Source of the DNA: Oikopleura dioica
Taxonomy: Eukaryota; Animalia; Chordata
Length of the DNA stretch: 64,000 nt
NCBI GenBank assembly: GCA_907165135.1
Contig: OU015566.1
Span: 14,074,001 to 14,138,000, forward strand
Direction of reading: 5' to 3'
In this document: piece after piece, positions 44,645 through 50,939 of the stretch
Numbering within the stretch: the first letter of the stretch is position 1
Layout of the letters: each line of letters begins with the position of its first letter
Position numbers and translations under genes: made by a program
The notes under the pieces: generated by a model
The model's input: the letters and a program-made list of their open reading frames with translations, nothing else
Databases searched by the model: none
Told to the model about the DNA's origin: nothing

Positions 44645-45438
44645 CTATTTGGAGTCGCGATCTTTCACGTGTCCGGCTAGCCATGCGATGCCTTCGATAA
44701 TGCCCGTCTAGAAATGTTTTTCCTACTGAAATCAAGGAAGAGAAACTCACCTTATTGATATCTTCTTCTATCGCATTCGACGAAACGATGTTATATGTTT
44801 TTCCTCGTAGCAGTTTCGGAAGATCCAGCAGCTGGGTTATTTCAACTTCTGAACACGAGTCTGCCAGGTCCATTTTATTCGCGAAGAAGAGAAAGACTGC
44901 GTTGTTCTTTTGTATCGAGCTGTCCTCTAAGAAATTGTTGGAAGGGATGAAAAAGGGCCTAAATATCTTGCTCTGAGAAAAAAATGCTTCATTCAATAAA
45001 CTCAAAAAACTAAAGTGAGCGGTTTCGTAGCGAAAAAAATACGGTCGCGATGCGCCCGGAGCCCAGATTGAAGATAAACGACAACAACTTACTGAGAATT
45101 CCCTCAAGCTCATCTTTTGCAACTGCCATCCTCAACCTATCAGCAGAATCGATTACAAAGATCACCGCCTGGGCGTCCTTGTAGTACATTTCCCACATGT
45201 TCCGATACCGCCCTTGTCCAGAAAAGTCCCAAACTGTAAACTCCAGTCCGCCAGCTTGGAACTTTTCGGAGACAAAGCCGACTGTAGGGACGATTTCTTC
45301 AGACCTCTGCTTCGTTTTTGGCGGCTTGAGGCGGTTTATAATTGTTGTTTTGCCGGAGTTGTCGAGGCCGACGCAGACGACCTTGGCTTCAGGCTTTTTG
45401 ACGCCGAAGAGGAGGAGAATTTTATCGAGCAGACCCAT
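44645..45438 (-). CDS. ARL6: ADP-ribosylation factor-like 6 (BBS3)
   Basis: [60 protein letters not shown]. Confidence 0.93.
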
Positions 45439-45722
45439 TTTAGGCGATTTGATTCATTCTATTAAGTTTTCGAATTGAAGCATTTTCGATCATAGAAAAA
45501 TTAATTTATAAAACAGCAGGGAAGTTCATAGAACTTTTTTGAGGGTGTCACTAGAATTGACAAGCTCAAAAAAGTTCCAAATGAAAAATTACTTTTTGAC
45601 AAAGCTCACAACATTATCACATAACATCATGAGGGTTGTATGGAGGCACTACCAGGTAGAGTGAATTAAAAATTAAAGTTTGATGAAGCTTAGAAATATC
45701 AAAATGTGATCAGTGGAAGGGT

Positions 45723-47352
45723 TTACTTCTGAGAAGTGATACGAATATCCTGCAGTTGGATATTCGTCTTGTAGGCTCTAGCAGATGGTCTTTTATTGTG
45801 GAGAGCTGGGTTTGACGCTGACTGACTTATCCGAGGATCAGTACTTGCCCATCTTAGAAAAGGATAGCAAAGATAAAGCTACAAACGACTCACTTCGTGG
45901 ATATGTTTTTGCTTGTTGTTACATGCGTTCTTGTCAAATTCTCCGCAGTTTCTTCGTTCAGCGGATTCATCGGATCATACCCTCTCCGATCTCCAGGGGC
46001 GGTCCGATCAGTAAGGTCCCTGTAGTTGTCCTTGAGTCTATCATTGTGCTTTGCAAACTCAAGATAATAGCACAACGGGCATTGGTTGGGAAATCGGCTT
46101 TCCCGCTTCTTCAACATTTCAATATGGCCAAGCGCGCAGATTCTGCAAATTCTAGCCGTGTGAATGCACTTCGAAAACACGTCATTCATCGGCACAATAA
46201 TCGACACTGGTCGCTTGAGCGTACACACGGTGCATTCGGCGTTTTCGACTTCTAACTTTGGCGTTTGAAAACGATCCCGGCTGATGATCCCTGAAGCGAT
46301 GGAACCGACATCGTCCAGATCTTCTCCGACAGGAGTTTGGAGTTCCGATCGATCTTGAATGACTGGAGGTTGATTTGGCGACCTACGAAAGTAGTCCATC
46401 ACTTTGGCTCGTTTATCAGTGTCAGGGAGCCGGTGATAAGTGCCAATAACCGGTCCATTCATCGGATGATACTGCTGCTGCTGCTGAAGGTAAATCTGCC
46501 GTGGAGGAGTTTGAATGTCGCGATCTGGGTGGGGAACTTTATTTTCAACCTTCAGCTGACCCATTCTCATAACTACAATAGCATGAAACGCGCTCTAGAA
46601 GTTTTTCTTTACTACCCATCGAATGGTCGTTCTCCGGAGTGGAACTACTCATGCGTGTCGAAGAATTGTGCTGGGGAAAATTAACCGCCAATTGTCTCTT
46701 TCTCTCTTCTGGGACGTCTTTTGTTCTGATTGCAATCCTTGATTTTCGTCCAATTCCTTCACGCGTTTTCTTTTCGTCAAGACTTTTCCAGAGCGGCTAG
46801 GAAAAATGATACAACGATGAATTGTGAGAGGAACTAACCTGTAAGAGCTTGTAAACGAGATTTTTCTTTGCCGTTCGTTTATCCCCGCCGACATCGCCCT
46901 TGACCTTCGGTTCGCCGTCGTAGTAAGCTACATGTCCGTTCGATGTCTTTTCTCCTCGGATAAGCTCCGTCTTGATCTCAGCGCCGAGTCCATTAGCAAG
47001 TTCTACGAGAAATTTAGTCAGTAGCATTTAATTATAGCAAACCTAATATATCCAACGCTTTCTCTCGAACATACGTCTCTGGAAACTGAATCGACGCAAT
47101 CAAATTGAAAGCTGCGGAATAGAGCGCTTCTCGTTTACTCGATCCATTTCCCTATCAAACATGACATGAGTTCAATTCTGAAACAAGTACCGTGTACAAT
47201 TCGTCCAAATACTCGAGCGAAGCGTTAAATCCTTGAGCATTCATTCCTTCCTTGAATTTGAAAAACTCGCGCCACGAGCCACCACCGATCGCCACGATTA
47301 TCTGCATTGAATATTTATCGTTCCATTCTGGATACCGAGCGTCAGGCGACAT
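45723..47352 (-). CDS. Two divergent dsRNA-binding domains fused to a C-terminal RING-like finger
   Basis: GNGSSKREALYSAAFNLI and GGDKRTAKKNLVYKLL dsRBD-like ends; CTVC...CIHTARICRIC...CPLC RING-HC spacing; in-frame stop just upstream of ATG 47352; last exon tentative. Confidence 0.65.
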
Positions 47353-47538
47353 GCTTTCTTATTTCGATTCTTCTAAAAAGAGGAGCTCAGTTAGTTTTTC
47401 AATCGAATCTGTTTATTTTATTTATCAGTCGTAAAAATCATGGAAGAAATGGTTGTGAATCCATTATGACAGGTGGGAATCTGAACTTTTGGGATCTCTG
47501 TAGCGACAACTGGCGGTCAAGAAAAGGCAGTTTTCTTT

Positions 47539-49461
47539 CTACTTGTAAATCTTCGAAATCGAATCATCAATCTTGAAATCGACCGAGCACCATCTAAAAA
47601 TCAATCAGTTTACGAAAAGTTTTCAGGGAAAGGGACAATTAAAACAAGAAGCAACAAATGATGCAACATTCCAATTAATATGTTGTCTCGACGGACTAGT
47701 CACGAAATGTACGAAAAAATTAATACTGAGTATGAAATTAAAATAATGAAAGCTGTGACAGAGTAATCATACTTGGACGAAATTGCAGATACAGCATCGT
47801 CTCCTTGATTTCCAGCGTCAGAACGACCAGTTACGTAGCCAGAAGTTTGAGGTTCGTTATGTTGAATTACTGTTGCATCTCCGTCGGGCGACGTTCCCTT
47901 CTGAGTCTGTTGAAGAAGTTCTAGATGGCTCAGATGCTTTTTTAGCGCTTCGATTTCTTTCGTTAGCTTGTCCTCGCTTTTGTCCGGCGAAACTGCTTCT
48001 GTTTTATAATCGCTCAAAAGACTTTCACTTTCGTACGAAACCCCAGAGTCTCGCTTCGATTCCAGCTTGTCAATTTCATCGTAAAGTGTTTCCTTTCTCT
48101 TGTCCAAAGCTCCATTTATTTCGCGCTTGAGGCTGGTCCATAGAGGTTTTAAAAGATTGAAGACAAGATTTTTCTTTGCTGAGGCCTTGCTTTGAGAGAT
48201 TCTACCATGTTCCATCACGCCAGGAGCCAAGTACTTGCATTGAAATTTTTTCGTGCCATCAACCATCACTTCTTCGACTCGGATGTTATCTCGGTTGATT
48301 GGACAACCATTTCGAACAGCAAATTCTAAAAATATGTGAATATAAGATCATAAAGTGGGAGAGATTTCTTACCGAGGATTGCCATGCAGTTTTCTTCAAG
48401 GAATCTATCTAGTCCGTCGAGACAACATATTAACTGGAATGCCGCATCATTTGTGGCTTCCGATTTTCCTTGTCCAATTCCCTAAAAAGATCTTAATTCG
48501 AATTCATCTTCAAAGAAAACTTACCCTGAATGTTGATCCTTCGTAAATGAGTGTAGCATCGTATTTGCCGTCTGTGAGTGCATTCAGCTTGAGTCCAAGA
48601 ATGTCTTTCCAAGAAGCACTTTTTGCGAGTGCGGTCAGAATTGGAATGTAATAGTCGCTATTCCAGTGAGGGAATCTGCCTCTAACGGTGCTCGCTCTTG
48701 AGCCAGTTGAGACTTCTACAGGAGGGCCACTCTTGATTGAGCTTGAAGGAAGGCTTGAGAATGATAGCTCCGTCGAGTTTGTCGATGTCTTCTGCGGTTC
48801 CGGAACAATTTTTATGATCGGCTCCTTCAAAACAGCAACAGGTTCAGGTCTGATAGGACTCATGGGTGGAGATTTCTTCGGTTGAACTCGTACCGCGGGT
48901 CGTTGTGGAGAAGAATTAGGCGTGACCGGCAAATTTTCATTGGCGAAGGTTTTGTCCATCTCTTTCCAGAGAGGCGAAAGAAGCTCGTACGCCAAGAGTC
49001 TCTTTGCATCCTTCTTGACGGCATTTCGAATCTCCAAATCGCTACGGCCAATGTAAGTAGCAACGAATCCACCAGCCGGTGCAGGATTGATTCTCATTTT
49101 ATCAGCCAGAATTCCAGCCCCTTCTCGATTCGCAAGCTCTTAAGAAATTTTAAGTTTGTTAAAAATTATCATTATTACCAAGAAACTGCAAACTATTTGC
49201 CTTCACTATTTCCCGCAAATTTTTGAATGTCTTGAGTAGTTTGAAGGACGCACGATGCTCTGCCTTTTTCTTGCTACTTCCTACTCCTTCAAATGTCTTT
49301 CCATCGTTCTTCAGGCGAACCAAAAACTCATGCTCACCAACTCGCTGTTCTGTAAGCTGGAATTTCGATTTCCAATCACATCCCTTAGCGAGCTGAATAA
49401 GAACGAGCGTGGAATATTGATCCGACCACTTTGGGTACTTGCTCTTTGTTTCTTCGGTCAT
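47539..49461 (-). CDS. Protein with four dsRNA-binding-like domains (two tandem pairs); 3' end tentative
   Basis: FEGVGSSKKKAEHRASFKLL (canonical dsRBD motif), VKKDAKRLLAYELL, GIGQGKSEATNDAAFQLI, SQSKASAKKNLVFNLL; repeated (Y/F)PxW lead-ins. Confidence 0.7.
47627..47699 (+). repeat. Inverted 73-nt copy of the exon segment at 48409-48481 with its own TTTTCAG acceptor
   Basis: 62/73 identical by manual alignment; last 25 nt identical (TTAATATGTTGTCTCGACGGACTAG). Confidence 0.85.
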
Positions 49462-49780
49462 CAATCCTTCTACAAGTGAAACATGCAAAATCAATTCCGA
49501 CAAAATGCAATAATCCACGAATGCGAATTATAAACAACAAGTTGTTTTTTGGGTAATCTTTTATTTTTTCAACCATCACCAGACAGAAAAAAGTGAGGGG
49601 AGGAGTAAAATTGGTACAGGTAGGTTCTGAGAAAGAATCTGGCTTCTGGGCAGGGAGGAACTGGTTCGGAAAAAGTAAGAACTTTTTGGAAAAAATTCAA
49701 TTGTGCACCGATACTGGGGTTTTTAGGAGAGAAGGGGGAGCGAAAGAGGGCAATTTTTAGGAGAGCGACATTTTGCGATT

Positions 49781-50939
49781 TCACAATTTTGCTTTGAGCA
49801 TGGCATCGAGCTTTTCAGCGTCGTTGGCGAATCGGACGATGCCATTGGAGAGGAGATCGACGGCGCAAGGGTCGGTGTTGTGTTCCCATCGGAAGGCCGC
49901 TTCGTCCAAGGATACCTTATCCTGAAAAAGCTGTCAAAAGAGAATCGCTAGAAGCTCGACTGACCTTGGAAGAGTTCTTGGCCTCTTCAGAGCATAAGTT
50001 TCTTGGCAGGTTGTTCGTCTCGCCATCAGCCTTCAAGTTCTCCAGCAAAGAAGGAGCAATGGTCAGCAAATCGCAGCCAGCAAGAGCCTTGATTTGTCCA
50101 ACATTTCTGAAGGAGGCGCCCATGACCTGGGTGTTGTAGCCGTGCTTCTTGTAGTAGTTGAAGATGTCTCGGACGGAAACTACTCCTGGGTCTTCTTCGG
50201 AAGGACCGTCTTTCGCGAAGTTGCCCTTTTTCACATGCCAGTCGAAGATTCGACCGACAAAGGGGGAGATAAGCGTCACTCCAGCTTCGGCACAGGCGAC
50301 TGCTTGGGCGAAACTAATGAATATTGTTGAAAAGGGGACGTAATCAAGCTGACTTACGAGAAAAGAAGAGTCAGGTTGCAGTGGATTCCCTCTTGCTCTA
50401 GTTCTTTGGCGGCTTGAATACCTTCCCAGGTTGAAGCGATTTTGATGAGGATTCGTTCTTTGCCTGAAAAAGATGGTAAACAGGATCTTTATCTGGTCAG
50501 ATAACGTACCGACTCCTCGCTCTTTGAACAAATTGATGATTCGGTGAGCTCGTTTGAGAGTCTCTGCTTTGTTGTAGCTCAATCGAGCGTCACATTCGAC
50601 GGAGATTCTTCCTGGAATCTTCTCCAAAACTTGATTTCCAACAGCGACAAAAAGGTGGTCAGCAGCAATGGCGAGTTTGTCATCTCCTTCGGCTTTCTTA
50701 GCGTATTCGGCAGCGGCTTCGATGTGCTTATCATATCCTTAAAAGGTTGAAAAGGAGAAGGGAAGATAGACATTACCTTCAACCTTCATGGCAGCGAGAA
50801 CAAGTGAAGGATTGGTAGTAGCGTCGGTGGGCTTGTAAAGATCCATGGCAGAGAAATCGGCAGTGTCGGCAACAACAGTGGTCAAAGCCTTCAGGCTTTC
50901 CAAAGCGTTTTCGTGTCGGGTCTTCTTAGTTGGGGTCAT
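49781..50939 (-). CDS. TALDO1: Transaldolase
   Basis: [57 protein letters not shown]. Confidence 0.97.

Follow-up and report, generated by a model that had tools for sequence, protein, structure and literature searches.

Can one animal protein read double-stranded RNA (dsRNA) and also carry a ubiquitin ligase domain? This question is raised by two adjacent minus-strand genes of the chordate Oikopleura dioica, which occupy positions 45723 to 49461 of a 64,000-nucleotide stretch of contig OU015566.1 (14,074,001 to 14,138,000; hereafter the window) of the OKI2018_I69 genome (PMC8008620). A first-pass annotation had described both genes as built from the same pair of dsRNA-binding domains (dsRBDs), the downstream one with a RING finger added, and had read them as a candidate lineage-specific system of dsRNA surveillance in a housekeeping operon. 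Here, the downstream gene (gene 2) was found to belong to a family in which the dsRBD module and a RING-like zinc finger are fused in one mRNA and one protein, a combination for which no named family or paper was found, and it probably links structured RNA to protein ubiquitination. Of the earlier interpretation, the dsRBD folds, the RING in the same mRNA, the undescribed architecture and the operon were retained; the conserved two-gene system and a RING membership at the level of Pfam were not.

Gene Models and Fusion of Both Parts in One mRNA

The window genes were searched exon by exon, and the database entry P0015 (CAG5108510.1) was used as the full-length reference for gene 2. The limits given in the first-pass annotation, 45723 and 49461, turned out to be the exact coding ends of the two genes, which were modeled as follows:

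47539-49461, minus strand: gene 1, 537 amino acids (aa), exons 49461-49179, 49138-48525, 48481-48373, 48325-47773 and 47593-47539
45723-47352, minus strand: gene 2, 474 aa, exons 47352-47191, 47151-47043, 47002-46839, 46796-46616, 46572-45894 and 45852-45723
47190-47152, 47042-47003, 46838-46797, 46615-46573 and 45893-45853, minus strand: gene 2 introns, compared with the loci of relatives

The six coding exons of gene 2 total 1425 nt, corresponding to 474 codons and a stop, and their translation is identical to P0015. The gene 1 exons sum to the annotated product of 537 aa over the same span. Both models agree exactly with the NCBI annotation, and the GT..AG introns of the window genes are tiny (39–47 nt in the minus-strand models). 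Gene 2 consists of one dsRBD module, a disordered linker of about 160 aa, a C3HC4 zinc finger and a short conserved tail:

47086-47331, minus strand: dsRBD A, residues 8-76, split by intron 1; RNA-contact motifs degenerate except for SKR-x-A
46761-47079, minus strand: dsRBD B, residues 79-157, split by introns 2 and 3; an LLQPLW helix follows helix 2
46235-46760, minus strand: linker, residues ~158-318, predicted to be disordered (pLDDT <50), basic and then Q/P-rich
46070-46234, minus strand: RING-like C3HC4 zinc finger from C319 to C373, with two helices behind it
45723-45852, minus strand: last small exon with the conserved C-terminal tail, ending in a hydrophobic-x-L-x-D-hydrophobic-basic pattern; annotated in P0015

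The fusion of the RING with the dsRBD module in one mRNA and protein is documented by four independent lines of evidence from relatives. The O. dioica spliced-leader sequence is given in PMC6883708, and its last 24 nt form the beginning of L009, a 1489-nt contig of a public run from a relative about 70% identical. The leader of this contig has been spliced onto the AG acceptor known from the genomic locus L001 and is followed by an unbroken open reading frame (ORF) of 473 aa comprising module, linker, RING and tail. The same intron-free ORF is present in L011, behind 491 nt of upstream sequence not yet replaced by trans-splicing. In L002 and L004, the intron between exons 4 and 5 has its donor and acceptor at the same codon positions as in the window, with a diverged intron sequence; in L002 it measures 39 nt and is readable through in frame. 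Finally, in L005 to L008 (P0009, P0010, P0013 and P0014, a TARA metagenome among their sources) domain B, linker, RING and tail form a single ORF of 367–390 aa, with the domain-A exon located just upstream. The gene 2 orthologue therefore has its own spliced-leader-capped mRNA containing the RING, and the objection considered in the first-pass annotation, namely that the RING exon belongs to a separate transcript, does not apply to the relatives.

It is extremely improbable that the fusion is an annotation artefact in which a downstream cistron containing the RING exon was joined by mistake to the dsRBD gene. Such an artefact could be argued from the frame of exon 4 in the window, which stays open past the TGA at 46545 only after excision of a 43-nt intron whose GTAGTA donor is weak, and from the RNA runs, which gave no strain-matched reads. 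Against it stand the joined ORF in the spliced-leader-capped L009 and the transcript-like L011, the in-frame readable intron of L002 and the absence of any intron between domain B and the RING in L005 to L008; for the relatives, a merged annotation is excluded. An alternative exon 4–5 intron of 92 nt was rejected, being outside the 39–47 nt range of intron sizes at the locus and off the donor position conserved in the relatives.

The 491 nt at the start of L011 (L011:1-491) are genomic upstream sequence that crosses the trans-splice acceptor, although all cis-introns of the gene 2 orthologue have been removed. L011 looks like a cis-spliced precursor before trans-splicing.

The intron content of gene 2 differs between the relatives, so that intron gain and loss between cryptic species is visible at this gene. 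Intron 1 is present in L004 and absent in the L001/L002 lineage, and introns 2 to 5 are all absent in the distant homologues of L005 to L008. Two introns of 39 nt are readable in frame, intron 2 in L001/L002 and intron 4 in L002, and prokaryote-style gene callers consequently output fused ORFs.

Within the linker, the short motif NLA-x-x-FPQ is conserved and is also found in the distant homologues P0009, P0010 and P0013. The GTGAGT donor leading to the last exon of gene 2 overlaps an apparent TGA at 45892-45890. The tail encoded by this exon is the same in the transcript-derived proteins P0019 and P0020, and the distant homologues end in FTLKDIHTK, FTLDDVKRD and YTLDDLHKK.

The Paired dsRBD Module

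In total, three copies of the module were identified, two in gene 1 and one in gene 2, with the lead-ins YPKW, FPHW and YPEW. The first domains of the three modules carry GVGSSKKKAE, GIGQGKSEAT and GNGSSKREAL, and the second domains terminate in KKDAKRLLAYELLSPLW, KASAKKNLVFNLLKPLW and KRTAKKNLVYKLLQPLW, following the pattern K-x2-AK...LL-x-PLW. The earlier description of adjacent same-strand genes sharing a two-domain module was thereby reproduced, with all three copies and their motifs at the positions given for them. A comparison of the gene 1 and gene 2 modules yielded a tblastn E-value of 2e-11 (small database). The two genes have common intron positions, one ahead of the GxGxSK helix and one within the first helix of the second domain. 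Judged from their sequences, the module copies of gene 1 and gene 2 are paralogous.

The fold of the gene 2 module was modeled with AlphaFold on an alignment of family members. The model (pLDDT 87.2, pTM 0.79) comprises two alpha-beta-beta-beta-alpha units, the folds that the first-pass annotation had called for as a check. Domain A, at a pLDDT of about 90, consists of a helix (residues 12-30), three strands (34-38, 41-48 and 51-57) and a second helix (60-74); for domain B, helices at 79-95 and 132-157 and strands at 105-110 and 113-118 were assigned. The top Foldseek matches of the module were DGCR8, MLE, TRBP, Loqs and NF90. A comparison with 48,161 chains using VIA-align returned almost exclusively dsRBDs with Z-scores of up to 8.9. 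The best match of domain A was the Dicer dsRBD 3c4t (Z 8.9; root-mean-square deviation (rmsd) 2.0; 61 residues aligned), and R2D2, Staufen dsRBD5 (Z 8.7) and Loqs dsRBD3 (Z 8.1) were also found. Domain B matched DRB3 dsRBD2 over residues 79-163 (Z 6.8), and tandem chains of DGCR8, NF90 and TRBP cover both domains. A shape search of the Atlas with the module returned dsrm families only. On these models, both domains of gene 2 are clearly predicted to fold as dsRBDs, and for gene 1 we infer the same folds from its paralogy with gene 2.

At the level of sequence profiles, only the first domain of gene 1 (A1), which aligns with domain A of gene 2, passes the Pfam dsrm gathering score of 23 bits:

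49180-49461, minus strand: gene 1 exon 1, complete first dsRBD (A1), YPKW lead-in and GVGSSKKKAEHRA; Pfam dsrm, 30.9 bits against the cut-off of 23, E 4.1e-7

Domain A of gene 2 remains below this score with 16.4 bits (E 0.014). Domains A and B of gene 2 could be aligned in register using hhalign, with a weak score (E 0.0028, probability 11%), and the domain B profile matched only a designed repeat protein among the solved structures.

The RNA-contact residues were assessed by inspection of the alignments. The helix-1 Glu (L-E-L-A) is present in the B domains of gene 2 and the orthologues, and helix 2 of domain B begins with K-[KR]-x-A-[KR] in all copies (K-R-T-A-K-K in gene 2), with K-A-S-A-K in gene 1 B2; conservation does not extend to the loop motif. 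In the A domains, only S-K-[KR]-x-A has been retained, to which G-E-H is added in gene 1 A1.

The C3HC4 Zinc Finger

The cysteines and the histidine of the zinc finger are spaced C-x2-C-x18-C-x-H-x4-C-x2-C-x18-C-x2-C, and all eight zinc ligands are invariant among the family members whose sequences span the finger. Also conserved in the family are a V, I or M before C2 and a Pro after C7. These are the classical E2-contact positions of RING-E2 interfaces, and their residues fit a putative binding of an E2.

The region was modeled at a pLDDT of 80–89. Its best solved neighbor is RING1 of HOIP (6sc5_A; Z 5.2, rmsd 2.1, 52 residues aligned, 23% identity), followed by RING1 of HHARI, RNF144A, HOIL-1 and Parkin, by ARIH2, and by U-box and RING-HC domains. 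For the Atlas's own model of the gene 2 protein, all neighbors were RING or RBR domains with TM-scores of 0.50–0.59. A PDB profile search with the RING region listed HOIP RING1 (E 0.39) as the sole RING among weak and unrelated matches, and the RING exon profile gave nothing meaningful against solved structures. In the 474-aa protein P0015, no cysteine follows C373 and no IBR match was obtained with Pfam; since there is no cysteine past the RING, the gene 2 protein is not an RBR ligase. The zinc finger is classed here as RING-like, and its E3 activity is putative.

Distribution and Selection of the Gene 2 Family

The family was identified only in several cryptic lineages of O. dioica and in eukaryotic contigs of marine metagenomes with the same gene order. 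When the RING-exon profile was compared with 1.84 billion protein representatives, six matches were obtained, all of them members of the gene 2 family. Word-based protein searches with the RING exon, the intron-poor module ORF of L001 and P0015 returned close fragments, two close fragments and P0003 only, respectively, and no named homologue. The family entries are called only "hypothetical protein" or carry a coding-sequence identifier in their sources. Neither the family profile searches nor the literature searches gave a named family with a dsRBD module plus RING architecture, and no paper coupling dsRBDs with RNA-binding E3 ligases was found in a full-text literature search. The dsRBD-RING combination has, by these searches, not been described before, in line with the earlier suspicion of an unrecognized, lineage-specific architecture. 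The family looks lineage-restricted, of an appendicularian type.

Compared with two transcript-derived relatives, exons 1 to 5 of gene 2 showed a pN of 0.04–0.24 against a pS of 0.5–0.9 in each block, values which are to be read as proportions and not as rates because the synonymous sites are saturated. For the linker, pN was 0.12–0.21 and pS about 0.8. This pattern of substitutions indicates that gene 2 is under purifying selection.

Comparison With Known Systems

In its layout, gene 2 resembles the RNA-binding RING ligases (RBULs) MEX-3, Roquin, MKRN and CNOT4, in which an N-terminal RNA-binding module is followed by a flexible linker and a C-terminal C3HC4 RING and for which RNA-guided ubiquitination is presumed. 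Unlike gene 2, the known RBULs use KH, ROQ, CCCH or RRM domains; no described member has dsRBDs, and there is no sequence relation to gene 2.

The zinc finger is most similar in structure to RING1 of the RBR ligases (HOIP/RNF31, HHARI, RNF144A, HOIL-1 and Parkin). RBR RING1 domains have no basic linchpin after the last Cys, and the same holds for gene 2, which differs from the RBR ligases in lacking the IBR, RING2 and the catalytic Cys.

The two consecutive alpha-beta-beta-beta-alpha domains are shared with the tandem-dsRBD cofactors (DGCR8 core, TRBP/PACT, Loqs, R2D2, NF90 and DRB4), whose tandem structures align over residues 14-151. The arrangement of the domains differs (rmsd 10–14 Å in two-domain alignments), the sequences are unrelated beyond the fold motifs, and the YPxW lead-in and the LLxPLW helix are specific to the gene 2 family. 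The C-terminal effector is a RING in gene 2 compared to a third dsRBD, a heme/Rhed or a DZF domain in the cofactors. With no third dsRBD and no significant match to any solved dsRNA-binding protein, gene 2 does not belong to the TRBP/PACT/Loqs/R2D2 group, and the likeness is limited to the fold.

Function of Gene 2

The reading favored here is that gene 2 encodes an RNA-binding RING E3 ligase of the RBUL type, which in its full form we hold to be somewhat better than an even bet. Duplex RNA of the A form would be engaged by domain B and domain A would stabilise the dsRBD pair or bind a partner, while the flexible linker would let the RING carry E2~ubiquitin to proteins on the same RNA or ribonucleoprotein. 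The dsRNA binding, the E2 recruitment and any pathway of gene 2 are putative, and likewise dsRNA sensing, a small-RNA function and E3 activity. Given the Tyr found after C8 and a shape like that of RBR RING1 domains, more than one mode of E2~ubiquitin activation is conceivable.

A number of observations weigh against this reading. No Pfam RING threshold was reached by any sequence (E 0.08–8): the distant members gave E-values of 0.12–0.21 for zf-C3HC4, 0.11 for zf-RING_2 and 0.08 for zf-RING_5, and the window's own protein gave 1.2–7.9. The C3HC4 RING of the first-pass annotation was located correctly with respect to its eight ligands, and its membership by sequence lies below every Pfam threshold. 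The gap between the His and C5 comprises 4–5 residues in the family compared to 2–3 in the classical spacing, C-x2-C-x(9-39)-C-x(1-3)-H-x(2-3)-C-x2-C-x(4-48)-C-x2-C. A basic "linchpin" after the last Cys is present in many active RINGs; in gene 2 this residue is the Tyr. The structural Z-scores of the zinc finger, ranging between 3 and 5.2, can by themselves reflect the common arrangement of small zinc fingers. Among the dsRBDs, none of the B domains has a Pfam dsrm match, and domain A is devoid of the helix-1 Glu and of the GPxH loop. For gene 1, a metagenome scan with exon 2, its largest exon, yielded no orthologue.

The RNA runs are a further point on this side. Four runs labeled as this species (X1 and X4 to X6), mapped at 95% likeness to positions 45300-50000, showed almost zero depth, and the expression of the window's two genes accordingly rests on the annotation and the relatives. 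The near-zero depth extended to the ends of the transaldolase and Arf-like genes on either side, and reads were found only on a conserved intergenic block of about 50 nt. That the runs are nearly empty even on the ends of housekeeping exons suggests a divergence between lineages of this species label that exceeds what 95% likeness allows; the runs most likely come from another cryptic O. dioica lineage.

Several of these points would also be expected if the zinc finger had no ligase activity and served for structure or interaction, the protein being a dsRNA-binding adaptor or scaffold like TRBP, Loqs and R2D2, with the zinc finger standing in for the partner-binding third dsRBD. The RING matches are sub-threshold by sequence and modest by structure, a basic residue after C8 is missing, the H-C spacing is atypical, and the dsRBDs of R2D2, Loqs and TRBP are among the best structural neighbors of domain A. 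An adaptor of this kind is possible and, on balance, rather unlikely: the eight ligands and both classical E2-contact positions are conserved family-wide, and the neighbors of the two independent models are mostly E2-binding RING, U-box or RBR RING1 domains. The module, in turn, could be of the "type B" kind, with paired dsRBDs serving protein-protein contacts and aiming a RING ligase at another protein with dsRBDs, for instance Dicer, a DHX9-like helicase or the gene 1 product. Domain A has no canonical RNA-contact residues, the protein-binding Staufen dsRBD5 (Z 8.7) and Loqs dsRBD3 (Z 8.1) belong to its best matches, and the two domains are predicted to be packed as one unit (pTM 0.79). Without RNA binding it would be difficult to account for the K-[KR]-x-A-[KR] motif of domain B, kept throughout the family, and for the helix-1 Glu that gene 2 shares with its orthologues, so that we regard a pure protein-protein module as unlikely.

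The RBUL-type reading can be extended to a dsRNA-guided ubiquitin ligase invented in the chordate lineage, a surveillance or small-RNA switch which in the Okinawa lineage is tuned by gene 1 through hairpin feedback; this extension is quite doubtful. Domain B would read long duplexes from viruses, transposons and convergent or inverted-repeat transcripts, and the RING would ubiquitinate the proteins on the duplex RNA, which would give an animal without interferon-type sensors a means of surveillance or a switch in the small-RNA pathway. In the Okinawa lineage the RING-less gene 1, a paralogue with four dsRBDs, might tune the ligase, and an 80-bp hairpin in the gene 1 pre-mRNA might feed back on its own splicing or abundance.

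RNA-binding RING ligases connect RNA metabolism with ubiquitination, and none of those described reads dsRNA via dsRBDs. The gene 2 family, which is small, fast-evolving, conserved under selection and by all appearances limited to planktonic tunicates, combines a dsRBD reader with a RING-like finger. With about 470 residues and separable domains, gene 2 offers a compact test case for the question whether duplex RNA can direct ubiquitination. Moreover, the locus unites within a few kilobases a lineage-specific paralogue in an operon-like run, introns gained and lost between cryptic species, and an inverted exon copy that can form a hairpin.

Gene 1 as a Lineage-Specific Neighbor

Gene 1 is composed of module 1 (dsRBDs A1 and B1), a P/S-rich linker, module 2 (A2 and B2) and a coiled-coil tail, for which weak matches of the coiled-coil type only were obtained; the gene is intact over its five exons, and there is no RING. 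In L005 and L008, the gene 2 orthologue begins about 380 nt past the transaldolase, at a place where the window has 2.4 kb occupied by gene 1. The 2.2 kb that precede the gene 2 orthologue in L001 bear no relation to gene 1. A further metagenome scan with the domain-B alignment returned only two further gene 2 loci and no gene 1 orthologue. Since gene 1 is absent from the orthologous place in L001, L005 and L008 and had no match in the scans, it is a lineage-specific insertion or paralogue at this locus. The interpretation of the two genes as one system is not supported: the RING gene occurs without an adjacent gene 1 in three other lineages, so that the pair is not conserved.

Operon scrambling between O. 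dioica cryptic species has been reported (PMC11067885), and the insertion of gene 1 fits this observation. On this reading gene 1, a paralogue that carries two modules and a coiled coil but no RING, came to lie between the transaldolase and gene 2 through an insertion specific to this lineage. As a multivalent and probably dimeric binder, it is expected to recognize RNA of the same type as gene 2 and could compete or partner with gene 2.

The comparison of L001:1-2192 with positions 47353-49800 of the window places a synteny break directly upstream of gene 2 in this relative, which is about 70% identical. Downstream of the break, L001 is collinear with the window across the Arf-like, KNTC1-like and RRM genes.

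An inverted copy with two arms of 80 nt, 47620-47699 and 48409-48488 (minus strand), 85% complementary, lies within gene 1. The first arm is located inside the last intron, which is unusually long (179 nt), and its partner comprises the last 7 nt of intron 2 and the first 73 nt of exon 3. The RNA duplex of the arms was predicted at −116 kcal/mol compared to −25 ± 4 kcal/mol for shuffled sequences. This duplex is possible in the gene 1 pre-mRNA only, where the 3′ splice site of intron 2 would be masked by it.

Gene Order and Operon-Like Cluster

Over the 13,630 nt compared (OU015566.1, 14,113,723-14,127,352), the sequence of the window shows no mismatch to chromosome 1 of OKI2018_I69. Both genes are part of a minus-strand run of eight genes, encoding MPP6, a PCI-domain proteasome subunit, a transaldolase, gene 1, gene 2, an Arf-like GTPase, a KNTC1-like protein and an RRM protein. 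From MPP6 to the RRM gene, the intergenic gaps measure 78, 294, 320, 187, 285, 130 and 146 nt. Operons of O. dioica have been defined as genes on the same strand with a spacing of ≤500 bp (PMC11067885). The run, with all gaps between 78 and 320 nt, falls within this published definition, in agreement with the operon proposed by the first-pass annotation. The region between the two genes was characterized as follows:

47353-47538, minus strand: gene 1-gene 2 intercistronic region, 186 nt, with AATAAA at 47422 and a TTTTTAG acceptor ending at 47373

The acceptor ends 20 nt ahead of the gene 2 ATG, and the AATAAA lies 49 nt before the acceptor, which is the usual layout of an intercistronic region. 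A spliced leader on the mRNA of a gene 2 orthologue was seen in the relative's transcript L009 only, at the orthologous acceptor, and no precursor RNA bridging two genes of the cluster was observed.

The intergenic region separating gene 2 from the Arf-like gene harbors a block of about 50–55 nt (45598-45656) that is near-identical in L001, L002 and L004, with diverged flanks, and is followed by two more conserved blocks. This block is the sole place with reads of the RNA runs X4 to X6 at 95% likeness, and the flanks of these reads do not match. No Rfam match was obtained over 45300-50000. With its C-box-like ATGATG, the block could represent either a small RNA or some regulatory element.

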